Shown: positions 2,699 through 15,803 of the stretch, in pieces
Layout of the letters: every line of letters begins with the position of its first letter
How positions within the stretch are numbered: position 1 is the first letter of the stretch
Assembly: GCF_000006765.1 (NCBI RefSeq)
Contig: NC_002516.2
Strand: one strand, 5' to 3'
DNA: 64,000 bases
Source: Pseudomonas aeruginosa PAO1
GTDB lineage: Bacteria; Pseudomonadota; Gammaproteobacteria; Pseudomonadales; Pseudomonadaceae
Program-made: the position numbers and the translations under genes
The notes under the pieces: generated by a model
The model's database searches: none
Seen by the model: only the letters and a program-made list of their open reading frames with translations
What the model was told of the DNA's origin: nothing

Positions 2699-3151
2699 AT
2701 GGTCATGTTGATCAGTCGTCGCGTCGGCATCGTTCGCCTGGATGCGGTGATTTCCGAAAACCTCGCGCAGGCTGCCGTCAGCGCGCGCGGCGACCAGCTC
2801 ATCACCATCGTCGGCAGCATTGTCGACCATGCGCCCGCTGGCGAGCCGTTGCCCTCCTTGCTGCCGATGGAGGGAGGCAGCCGCGCGTTGAACGAGTGCC
2901 GTGTGCGCAAGGGCATCGCTGCCTTGACTTCACTGCAAGGCGCTTCCGAAACGGTGGACGTGCAAACGGGATTCCACCTGTATCGCGGTCTGTTCATCAC
3001 GCGCGTTGTTGCCCGGCGAACCGCAGAAAGAGGATTGAGCCTGACCATAACCGCCAGCCAGAGGCGTGCGCGGCGGGCAGGCGGTAGGTTGCTTAAGACT
3101 GTCGTCCGTCTTTTCCATGCAGGCAGGGCGACACCCTGCCCGGCACGCTAA
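2699..3151 (+). CDS. alpE: AlpE, phage-derived protein (Dit/baseplate N-terminal-like)
   Basis: 150 aa, RBS GAGGAG; family resemblance judged by eye. Confidence 0.7.
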   Translation: MVMLISRRVGIVRLDAVISENLAQAAVSARGDQLITIVGSIVDHAPAGEPLPSLLPMEGGSRALNECRVRKGIAALTSLQGASETVDVQTGFHLYRGLFITRVVARRTAERGLSLTITASQRRARRAGGRLLKTVVRLFHAGRATPCPAR

Positions 3152-3171
3152 GGGCGATGCCGGTCCTGCTT

Positions 3172-3711
3172 TCATCGGTATGAGGACGGCCCGGCCTTAG
3201 CTCCCGGGATCGACTCGCTCCACCCGGTACCTTCTCTTCCCTTCACACATCCCTCCTGATCGAAGCTCACGCTTCTCGCTCCCCGTCGCTTGTCGGCCTT
3301 GTACTGATAACGCACCTCCGCATTGTTCCCGCTGACCCGGTCCGGCTTGCCCAGCGCCCGCTCCACATCGGAGCGGGTCATTCCCGCCATTATCCGCTGC
3401 TCCACGATCGCCTTGCGGCGTTCCTTCTCGTCCAGGCGTCTGCCGCAGCGATCTTCTCTTTCTCCGATCACCGCGAGCGGCACGCTTTTCCGGCCGATGG
3501 ACGCCTTTTTCGTCTTCGTCTCGGCCATCGGCGTGACGCTCCTGCCTCCCGGCGGCGGGTTGTCCGCCACGACGGTCTCGCCGGCCTGCCCGGCGGGGCA
3601 ACCGAGTTGGGTGAAGCTGACATGGCCGCTGGCGTCTTCGCAGCGGAATACCGCAGCGGCCTCGCAGGTGGACGCCAGCGAGAGGAGGAGAAGGAGGGAC
3701 AGGGAACGCAT
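3172..3711 (-). CDS. Exported DUF4124-domain protein with C-terminal SmpA/BamE-like segment
   Basis: Signal peptide, VFRCEDASGHVSFTQLGCP (DUF4124), GMTRSDVERALGKP; GGAG 8 nt before ATG 3711. Confidence 0.75.
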   Translation of the reverse strand: MRSLSLLLLLSLASTCEAAAVFRCEDASGHVSFTQLGCPAGQAGETVVADNPPPGGRSVTPMAETKTKKASIGRKSVPLAVIGEREDRCGRRLDEKERRKAIVEQRIMAGMTRSDVERALGKPDRVSGNNAEVRYQYKADKRRGARSVSFDQEGCVKGREGTGWSESIPGAKAGPSSYR

Positions 3712-3889
3712 GGGCGGCACTCCGGGTCGGATAAGGGTGAGTGCAGGCTAACGCGTTGCCTTTTTCCGCGGGGCCGAGTGTCCTGAGTGAAATTTCCGGC
3801 GTCGCAGTCAGGCGTCGAGTGACGATGAACTTTGTGCCGCAAGCGCTTGTTCTTGCCGCCATTTTGTAACGCGCAAAACGCAAGCGGAG

Positions 3890-3898
3890 TGTTATCAT
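3890..3898 (+). promoter_or_regulatory. Extended -10 promoter for mgtE
   Basis: TG-T-TATCAT; implies an approx 130-nt leader. Confidence 0.5.
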
Positions 3899-3937
3899 TA
3901 TCCGTATCTGCCCCGAGAGGGCCCTTGGAACACCCCC

Positions 3938-3994
3938 ATGGACTTACCCAGTAGAAACTCGAACAGTTTCCCGTTTGACCAATCACGTTTCTGA
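3938..3994 (+). CDS. Candidate 18-aa leader peptide MDLPSRNSNSFPFDQSRF upstream of mgtE
   Basis: ATG..TGA in the leader, GGA 8 nt upstream, overlaps alternative pairing segments. Confidence 0.45.
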   Translation: MDLPSRNSNSFPFDQSRF

Positions 3995-4004
3995 TTGACC
4001 CCTT

Positions 4005-4038
4005 TGGCGTGCTCCGCTACTGGGGGTGGAGCGCGCTA
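4005..4038 (+). promoter_or_regulatory. Hairpin sequestering the mgtE Shine-Dalgarno and the first base of its AUG
   Basis: 14-bp stem with G-U pairs, 4005-4018 paired with 4025-4038, covering GGAG 4028-4031. Confidence 0.65.
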
Positions 4039-5486
4039 TGACCGAAGTAGAAGCCAAGAAGCCGCAGGAAAGCCTGCAGGACCGCCTAGCGCAGGTGGTC
4101 GAGCTGCTGCATCGCCACAAGGTGGTGGAAGACCTGACCCATCGTCAGGAAGGCCAGCACCATGACCGGGTGGAAAACCTCGTCCACCGGCAGAATCTCG
4201 TAGAACTCCAGCGCAAGCTGGAGGAACTGCACCCCGCCGACATCGCCCACATCCTCGAATCGCTGCCGCTGGACGACCGCCTGACGGTCTGGCAACTGGT
4301 CAAGTCCGAGGACGACGGCGACATCCTCCTCGAAGTCTCCGACGCGGTCCGGGAAACCCTGATCGCGGACATGGACGACCACGAGATCATCGCCGCGACC
4401 AAGGACCTGGACGCCGACGAACTCGCCGACCTGGCACCGGAACTGCCGCGCGACGTGGTCCATGAACTGATGGAAAGCCTCGACGCGCAGCAGCGCGAGC
4501 GAGTGCGTTCGGCGCTGTCCTACGAGGAGGACCAGGTCGGCGCGCTGATGGACTTCGAGATGGTCACCATCCGCGAGGACGTCAGCCTGGAAGTGGTGCT
4601 GCGCTACCTGCGCCGCCTGAAGGAACTGCCCGGGCATACCGACAAACTGTTCGTGGTCGACTACGACGGCGTGCTCAAGGGCGTGCTGCCGATCAAGCGC
4701 CTGCTGGTCAACGATCCGGACAAGCAAGTGCTGGAAGTCATGGCCACCGACCCGGTGACCTTCCACCCGGACGAGGACGGCTACGACGCCGCCCAGGCAT
4801 TCGAGCGTTACGACCTGATTTCCGCGCCGGTGGTGGACAAGGGCGGCAAGCTGATCGGTCGTCTGACCATCGACGAGATGGTCGACCTGATCCGTGAGGA
4901 AAGCGAAAGCGAAGTCCTCAACATGGCCGGTCTGCGTGAAGAAGAAGACATCTTCGCCTCGGTCTGGAAGTCGGTGCGCAACCGCTGGGCCTGGCTGGCC
5001 ACCAACCTGATCACCGCCTTCGTCGCCTCGCGGGTGATCGGTCTGTTCGAAGGCTCCATCGAGAAACTGGTGGCGCTGGCCGCGCTGATGCCGATCGTTG
5101 CCGGCATCGGTGGCAATTCCGGCAACCAGACCATCACCATGATCGTCCGCGCCATCGCGCTCGACCAGGTACAGCCGACCAGCAACAGTCGCAACCGCCT
5201 GCTGCGCAAGGAGCTTGGCGTCGCGCTGGTCAACGGCCTGGCGTGGGGCGGAGTGATCGGCGTGGTGGCCTTCTATCTTTACGGCAACTGGGAACTGGGC
5301 GTGGTGATGACCGCCGCGATGACCCTGAACCTGCTGCTGGCGGCGATGATGGGAGTGCTGATCCCGATGACCCTGCATCGTTTCGGACGCGATCCGGCGA
5401 TGGGCTCCAGCGTGATGATCACTGCGATGACCGACAGCGGCGGTTTCTTCATCTTCCTCGGCCTGGCGACGATCTTCCTGATGTAG
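4038..5486 (+). CDS. mgtE: Magnesium transporter MgtE
   Basis: N-domain (LHPADIA), tandem CBS domains, TM domain with GGNSGNQT and AMTDSGG. Confidence 0.97.
   Translation: MTEVEAKKPQESLQDRLAQVVELLHRHKVVEDLTHRQEGQHHDRVENLVHRQNLVELQRKLEELHPADIAHILESLPLDDRLTVWQLVKSEDDGDILLEVSDAVRETLIADMDDHEIIAATKDLDADELADLAPELPRDVVHELMESLDAQQRERVRSALSYEEDQVGALMDFEMVTIREDVSLEVVLRYLRRLKELPGHTDKLFVVDYDGVLKGVLPIKRLLVNDPDKQVLEVMATDPVTFHPDEDGYDAAQAFERYDLISAPVVDKGGKLIGRLTIDEMVDLIREESESEVLNMAGLREEEDIFASVWKSVRNRWAWLATNLITAFVASRVIGLFEGSIEKLVALAALMPIVAGIGGNSGNQTITMIVRAIALDQVQPTSNSRNRLLRKELGVALVNGLAWGGVIGVVAFYLYGNWELGVVMTAAMTLNLLLAAMMGVLIPMTLHRFGRDPAMGSSVMITAMTDSGGFFIFLGLATIFLM

Positions 5487-15726: not shown

Positions 15727-15803
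<77 letters not shown>

Follow-up and report, generated by a model that had tools for sequence, protein, structure and literature searches.

The stretch of DNA considered here (64,000 nucleotides from Pseudomonas aeruginosa PAO1, contig NC_002516.2; hereafter the window) contains the gene mgtE, and the nucleotides immediately 5′ of it form a leader with a short upstream open reading frame (uORF) and a hairpin in which the Shine-Dalgarno sequence (SD) of mgtE is buried. The first-pass annotation, made from the letters alone, had described this leader as a candidate translational attenuator, in which ribosome occupancy of the uORF would set MgtE synthesis by switching between mutually exclusive folds. 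The leader is conserved across Pseudomonas and the genera that have been split off from it; its presence is not due to chance, and this conservation is the strongest evidence for it.

In a protein search, the protein from the open reading frame (ORF) at 4038 shows 100% identity to the P. aeruginosa MgtE magnesium transporter. The program-made ORF list gives GTG at 4026 as the start codon, four codons 5′ of the ATG at 4038 and within the SD hairpin (4026-4037), and all relatives start mgtE at the ATG equivalent to 4038. The features of the leader and the gene are given below, with percentages of pairing taken over the cells of an alignment of 77 distinct leaders, on which the structure and folding statistics are based.

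3890-3898, + strand: -10-like promoter box TG-n-TATCAT, of which TAT.AT (3893-3898) is conserved in the 77 leaders
3910-3922, + strand: 5′ hairpin P1 (GCCC/GGGC here; 6 bp in most species), 97.8% of cells pair
3926-3938, + strand: UGG...CCA mini-helix ending at the A of the uORF AUG, 99.6% pairable, changes one-sided only
3931-3938, + strand: competitor 1, CACCCCCA, complementary to 4021-4028; a perfect 8-mer in the window, species-specific
3938-3994, + strand: uORF of 18 codons, MDLPSRNSNSFPFDQSRF, stop TGA at 3992-3994; present in 106/106 Pseudomonas-group loci
3947-3954, + strand: CCCAGUAG, uORF codons 4-6, complementary to 4017-4024; invariant in the 106 motif-bearing loci
3955-4004, + strand: uORF body and spacer, C-rich and G-poor (mean C 27% vs G 13%), sequence varying among species
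3980-3997, + strand: stop hairpin, CAAUCA (3980-3985) with UGAUUG (3992-3997), the 3′ arm holding the uORF stop; 93% of cells pair
4005-4038, + strand: SD hairpin of 14 bp, 4005-4018 paired with 4025-4038, in the minimum-energy and centroid folds
4038-5486, + strand: mgtE coding sequence (482 amino acids plus stop), Pfam domains MgtE_N, CBS and MgtE

Conservation of the uORF and its coding signal

One genome per species was scanned, which gave 80 mgtE loci from Pseudomonas, Stutzerimonas, Ectopseudomonas and Metapseudomonas with MgtE 87-92% identical to that of the window. A word-index protein search yielded only relatives of at least 90% identity, and more distant leaders were reached by a representative search and a metagenome scan: beyond the genus, a 60%-identical representative was taken and aligned with other representatives, after which metagenomes were scanned. 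The resulting uORF set comprises 106 Pseudomonas-group loci, with 74 distinct uORF sequences and 66 distinct peptides.

The uORF at 3938-3994 that the first-pass annotation had pointed out is indeed there on reading the sequence, with 18 codons, and the alignment of mgtE leaders across Pseudomonas that had been proposed as a check finds it conserved in 106/106 loci. It always begins with ATGGAyTTrCCCAGTAG about 100 nt 5′ of the mgtE ATG, is 17-23 codons long throughout and ends 35-44 nt 5′ of that ATG (40 nt in 90 loci); a conserved short leader ORF, as is typical of a leader-peptide translational attenuator, is thus a constant of this group. Specifically, it is present in 80/80 genome loci and in 25/25 metagenome loci with MgtE at least 85.9% identical to that of the window, and the exact motif is found in 0/55 loci with MgtE at most 78.8% identical. 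Within the 64-kb window, neither the 17-nt uORF motif (with up to three mismatches allowed) nor a covariance model of the leader (R1) yields a further copy. With default filters R1 has no match in 55 non-Pseudomonas mgtE loci; with the filters off, L116 and L101 give weak matches at the expected position (12.6 and 9.7 bits, respectively). Both are metagenomic mgtE loci outside core Pseudomonas with divergent versions of the leader (458-615 in L116, 431-603 in L101). In L101 (MgtE 68% identical) a 16-codon uORF, MDSSSRSLHPVKRKHD, lies at -101, its N-terminus 3 nt shorter in frame and its body unrelated; L116, the nearest outlier (MgtE 79% identical), retains CAGUAG, a CAAUCA-like hairpin and GGGUGGAG.

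The pattern of variation within the uORF suggests that it is probably translated in the cell. Its frame is open in all 106 loci, where a shuffled body of like composition is stop-free about half the time (counting stop codons frame by frame can, by construction, say nothing about frame 0). Codons 1-6 vary at third positions only (GAC/GAT/GAA, TTA/TTG, AGT/AGC/AGA), Ser8 is written with four synonymous codons, and across codons 2-8 synonymous changes account for 7/14 single-base variant codon types compared with 19% expected (binomial P 0.009), an excess that is specific to frame 0 (P 0.32 and 0.68 in frames +1 and +2). A possible start signal is conserved too, namely the invariant GG of a GGA located 8 nt 5′ of the uORF AUG. 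Insertions and deletions inside the uORF are of +12, -3 or -6, or else move the reading frame so that it ends at the second UGA of UGAUUGA. Such frame-shifted uORFs (that of the P. aeruginosa window, +1, and that of the locus L011, -2) end at the same place, because UGAUUGA has overlapping UGA triplets in two frames; in the window, CUGAUUGA (3991-3998) carries two such triplets. The constrained part of the peptide is its N-terminal eight residues, and the rest is free to vary. The codons TTA, TCA, AGA and AGT, which had been called rare in this genome, are rare among the 12,069 codons of the high-GC3 ORFs of the window as well (0.2, 0.6, 1.1 and 3.4 per 1000, respectively).

Structure of the leader and its surroundings

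The 14-bp hairpin at 4005-4038, which had been said to bury the mgtE GGAG together with the A of its AUG, is reproduced by the minimum-energy fold, with the loop ACUGGG at 4019-4024 and with GGAG (4028-4031) and A4038 paired. As in a translational attenuator, a conserved hairpin encloses the SD and the start codon: over the 77 leaders its pairing holds in 83.6% of cells, CUGGG and GGAG are invariant or nearly so, and the loop-closing pair covaries (UA 47, CG 17), so that the 6-nt loop RCUGGG is fixed. The CAATCA/TGATTG hairpin over the uORF stop is likewise borne out by sequence and fold. Three of its pairs have changed on both sides, and the RNA motif is retained in P. aeruginosa even though the reading frame across it differs from that of other species. 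The 5′ hairpin P1, with 3/6 pairs changed on both sides, is present in the minimum-energy fold of every leader examined. Overall, 91.8% of cells pair in the named structure compared with 38-46% in slid controls, seven pairs change on both sides, and the folding of the whole leader has z = -2.1 against shuffles. RNAalifold recovered only fragments, because the 77 leader sequences are too alike. The covariation of stems that the first-pass annotation had hoped for is therefore seen in the closing pair of the SD hairpin, in P1 and in the stop hairpin, but not in the helix discussed next.

This competing helix joins the beginning of the uORF to the hairpin loop. The segment CCCAGTAG (3947-3954) is a perfect 8-nt complement of 4017-4024, and CCCAGU (uORF codons 4-5) is pairable with the loop RCUGGG in 99.3% of cells. 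Both of the perfect 8-nt competitors that had been described exist in the window, but only that at 3947-3954 is conserved, while that at 3931-3938 is not. The latter was rejected as a conserved element, its central two pairs being broken in 35-46/77 leaders and 351/500 shuffles being equal to it. Against 5000 dinucleotide shuffles of the upstream part, the probability of at least one such 8-mer is 0.10 and of at least two 0.03; the 8-mer complementarities alone are only suggestive.

Folding of truncated transcripts gives a predicted order of events. In transcripts ending just after CUGGG, the competing helix is part of the predicted minimum-energy fold in 71/77 leaders, that of the window included; at full length it survives in 22/77, and it yields once the 3′ arm of the hairpin exists. 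In a window transcript ending at the SD, competitor 1 replaces the competing helix before the full hairpin forms. Forcing CCCAG:CUGGG at full length costs at most 1 kcal/mol in 28/77 leaders (fluorescens-type) and more than 6 in 29/77. These modelled energies fit a kinetic, co-transcriptional switch and would not fit an equilibrium switch in P. aeruginosa. The CCCAG:CUGGG contact could also be of pseudoknot type, coexisting with the hairpin stem.

The 5′ end of the transcript is placed near 3905, which would make the leader about 130 nt long, because conservation starts at the TAT.AT box (T8, A9, T10 and A12 invariant and T13 at least 90% in the 77 leaders) and runs on through the compensated 5′ hairpin. 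A promoter scan gave no full sigma-70 match at the -10-like box, since a -35 element is absent, and a supplement of processing sites in PAO1 has no entry for mgtE. Farther 5′, a conserved block at 3838-3871, common to diverse Pseudomonas species, consists of GCAA-N4-TTGTTC followed by ATTTTGTAACG and includes here the perfect 10-bp palindrome CAAGCGCTTG (3840-3849). It is not the -35 of the -10-like box, because the spacing is too large; it could be an operator, or a promoter of mgtE or of the divergent neighbour. This neighbour (3172-3711, - strand) encodes 179 residues with a signal-peptide-like N-terminus, a DUF4124 domain and a borderline BamE-like domain; from its ATG at 3711, an intergenic gap of 326 nt separates it from mgtE. 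The sole RNA gene found by Rfam or ARAGORN in the window is a tRNA-Met (anticodon CAT) at 15727-15803 on the - strand.

A proposed switch and competing explanations

The reading towards which we lean, if only slightly, is that of a cis-acting leader in which the uORF is coupled to mgtE through a probably kinetic switch, with translation of the uORF opposing that of mgtE. The CUGGG of the hairpin loop would have two pairing options, either in the context of the hairpin, with the SD buried, or with the CCCAG(UAG) of the uORF, with the SD free. Because CUGGG is transcribed ahead of the 3′ arm of the hairpin, the helix with the uORF would form first: codons 4-6 would capture CUGGG, so that the newly made SD stays accessible. 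Initiation on the uORF, or a ribosome translating about its first ten codons, would disrupt this pairing, after which the sequestering hairpin could close; with no ribosome at the uORF start, the SD would remain open for longer. As the uORF stop is held 35-44 nt 5′ of the mgtE AUG, a terminating ribosome would end at the foot of the hairpin. We infer that uORF translation represses mgtE and that switching in P. aeruginosa is kinetic rather than at equilibrium. Anything that affects how ribosomes start on MDLPSS or elongate through its first codons, the rare UUA and AGU among them, is a candidate signal.

Several observations weigh against such a switch. For the window, the fold with the competing helix comes out 9.2 kcal/mol less stable than that with the hairpin, and the SD stays closed (unpaired probability 0.00) wherever a ribosome footprint is modelled on the uORF; a switch in P. 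aeruginosa would therefore have to be kinetic. Of the occupancy-driven change between exclusive folds put forward in the first-pass annotation, the conserved complementarity and the predicted folding order stand, but equilibrium switching in the window does not. No covariation is visible in the competing helix CCCAGU:RCUGGG, because one of its strands is invariant. The sole SD-like element of the uORF is a bare GGA (3927-3929, 8 nt 5′ of the AUG, its GG invariant in 77/77 leaders), and this is predicted to pair with the CCA beside the AUG. Within the frame, variation in codons 7-19 lacks three-base periodicity (codon-position entropy is flat, 0.69/0.66/0.78), the C-terminal half is kept as an RNA hairpin and not as a peptide, and the synonymous sites of codons 3-5 are near-invariant, and therefore under RNA-level or other constraint beyond coding. 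In L116 just a 4-codon ORF occupies the homologous place. Finally, P. aeruginosa mgtE mRNA was unchanged by Mg2+ depletion or by supplementation with 10 mM in RNA-seq (PMC11218974), which, at the level of transcripts, lends no support to Mg2+ as the signal.

The points about the frame speak at the same time for a non-coding structured RNA, whether riboswitch-like, an RNA thermometer or a platform of the RsmA/CsrA-family kind at three GGA sites (3927-3929, 3940-3942 and 4029-4031, the last in the mgtE SD), with the frame as a by-product: rare codons are retained across the genus along with the frozen sites of codons 3-5, P. aeruginosa reads the C-terminal half in another frame while keeping its hairpin, entropy is flat over codons 7-19, and L116 keeps the RNA motifs around its 4-codon frame. 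In strain PA14, a 1.9-fold higher level of mgtE (PA14_52460) mRNA is reported at 28 C relative to 37 C (PMC3460626), which also agrees with this explanation; the very stable SD hairpin might be linked to the difference. We nevertheless regard it as unlikely. A frame open in every one of the 106 loci when shuffled bodies are so often closed, a synonymous excess in frame 0 only, indels that preserve the frame or land on an alternative UGA and the ORF of L101, which survives an in-frame deletion and a complete change of its body, all count against it, as do the GGA triplets being predicted in stems instead of loops and the lack of a match to an Rfam family. If the uORF is translated, ribosomes that complete it would reach the foot of the very stable SD hairpin and would also occupy the C-rich, G-poor body; uORF translation may thus also act in the opposite direction, favouring that of mgtE and shielding the transcript from Rho-dependent termination, with CCCAG:CUGGG as a pseudoknot-type lock on an off state in which both ribosome-binding sites are blocked together. 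The stop lies at its fixed 35-44 nt and the hairpin base 7-10 nt past it, about the reach of a terminating ribosome as judged from ribosome footprints. The hairpin of P. aeruginosa is too stable for a competitor to open at equilibrium, and CUGGG, placed right in the 6-nt loop above a closing pair that covaries, fits a loop-to-strand contact alongside the stem. C exceeds G in 77/77 leaders between CAGUAG and the SD hairpin, by the margin given in the list of features, as in Rho-loading regions, and enterobacterial mgtA and corA leaders pair short ORFs with Rho-dependent termination (PMC5314796, PMC11552253); for the mgtE leader, Rho involvement is only suggested by this composition, and there is no intrinsic terminator in it. 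Against positive coupling, a ribosome footprint modelled at the last codon does not free the SD in the window and in other species opens no more than the base of the stem, and a 40-nt gap that holds a 14-bp stem is long for termination-reinitiation coupling. The mRNA that does not respond to Mg2+ counts against transcription attenuation driven by Mg2+, though not by other signals. All in all, positive coupling, the chief rival of the favoured reading and likelier than a purely non-coding element, appears rather improbable.

It may also be asked whether the peptide itself senses something. The first-pass annotation had favoured a sensor like MgtL, in which Pro codons or the destabilisation of ribosomes at low Mg2+ set MgtE synthesis, and such a sensor now looks very unlikely. 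In its favour, the gene under control encodes a Mg2+ channel, small residues follow the invariant Asp2 and Pro4, and constraint on the N-terminal eight residues only fits an event in early elongation; in MgtL, an acidic/proline motif within the first six residues acts, and does so more strongly at low Mg2+ (bioRxiv 10.1101/2021.02.02.429294). The published criterion for ribosome-destabilising (IRD) sequences is more than three D/E/P residues per 10-residue window (bioRxiv 10.1101/2021.02.02.429294). D/E/P make up 2 of residues 2-7 in 66/66 peptides, and more than three are found in residues 2-11 in 6/66 only (2 or 3 in 60/66; 2 in the window). By its D/E/P composition, the leader peptide accordingly falls outside the MgtL-type ribosome-destabilising kind. 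Of the two Pro codons that had been remarked upon, Pro4 is conserved but the second is variable, 36/66 distinct peptides having a single Pro; consecutive prolines of the kind that requires EF-P do not occur, and the peptide (a 23-residue variant used as query) has no NCBIfam or Pfam match. With only Pro4 kept, an N-terminus poor in D/E/P by that measure and an mRNA indifferent to Mg2+, sensing of Mg2+ through proline codons as originally suggested is not supported. A more general version, doubtful in our view, would make the N-terminal octapeptide (MDLPSS, then mostly Y-S) a new nascent-peptide sensor that couples the state of the ribosome to MgtE synthesis: elongation would abort early or pause under low Mg2+, aminoglycosides or scarce rare-codon tRNAs, and the coupling would run through a kissing contact of the uORF with the loop of the SD hairpin. 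As to other inputs, the small RNA sRNA196 has PA0913 as a predicted target and is reported to be without effect.

Relation to known leaders and significance

The kinetic switch favoured here would have relatives in logic, and the leader itself matches none of the known families. A cmscan of 3000-5000 at E <=10 returned three chance-level matches, all outside the leader, and a scan of the whole window at Rfam 15 gathering thresholds returned the tRNA only, and hence no M-box. The literature that was searched yielded neither a leader nor a uORF described for Pseudomonas mgtE, nor the peptide strings; that there was no prior description, as the first-pass annotation had supposed, thus agrees with both Rfam and the searched full texts.

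The mgtA leader of Salmonella and E. coli, with its ORF mgtL, is similar in that a short leader ORF with critical N-terminal residues lies 5′ of the gene of a Mg2+ transporter (PMC11552253) and in that the translation state of the ORF picks between alternative leader folds, which for the mgtE leader is a proposal. There is no sequence or family relationship between them. The mgtA leader controls Rho-dependent transcription termination, whereas the evident output of the mgtE leader is a hairpin sequestering the SD; the N-terminus of the mgtE uORF, unlike that of mgtL, is not D/E/P-rich by the published criterion, and the mgtE mRNA is not Mg2+-responsive. The corA leader (corL) of the same species is likewise that of a 'constitutive' Mg2+ channel and has a short ORF and alternative structures (PMC5314796, PMC11552253), but acts via Rho loading, pausing and termination, and has no homology to the leader described here. 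The M-box (ykoK) of Bacillus mgtE is also a cis-regulatory RNA ahead of mgtE-type genes, and the Mbox of M. tuberculosis even combines a conserved small uORF with a translational expression platform (PMC12810186). The M-box, however, is a large metal-binding three-helix fold, compared with some 130 nt of simple hairpins without an Rfam match. Finally, the 'mgtE motif', a riboswitch candidate of Thioalkalivibrio, is a conserved structured leader of an mgtE-annotated gene in which a stem carries SD and AUG at its base; it is reported from Thioalkalivibrio only (32 representatives), as a multi-stem non-coding structure for which no uORF is described (PMC11109978). There is no sign of relatedness to the leader of the window.

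Classical translational attenuation is known from inducible antibiotic-resistance genes, where a leader ORF precedes a hairpin that holds the SD and the position of the ribosome decides the pairing. The mgtE leader follows the same logic, and it too may be connected to a ribosome-targeting drug: tobramycin is reported to raise mgtE expression in biofilms (PMC8615142). In the classical attenuators, the stalled ribosome covers the 5′ arm of the hairpin, whereas the mgtE uORF ends 7-10 nt 5′ of its hairpin, and it is the segment covered by the uORF that is complementary to the loop and top of the hairpin. In its logic the mgtE leader is close to the classical attenuators and to the mgtA and corA leader ORFs, but it belongs to none of those families.

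In P. aeruginosa, MgtE is treated as a constitutive Mg2+ channel, and yet its level affects type III secretion via rsmY/Z. No mechanism controlling MgtE synthesis was found in the searched literature. A leader with key parts unchanged across the Pseudomonas group is a concrete and testable candidate for a point of post-transcriptional control. If the proposed switch is true, mgtE would join mgtA, mgtCBR and corA among the Mg2+ transport genes that are governed by leader ORFs, with an output (sequestration of the SD) and a peptide that differ from theirs.

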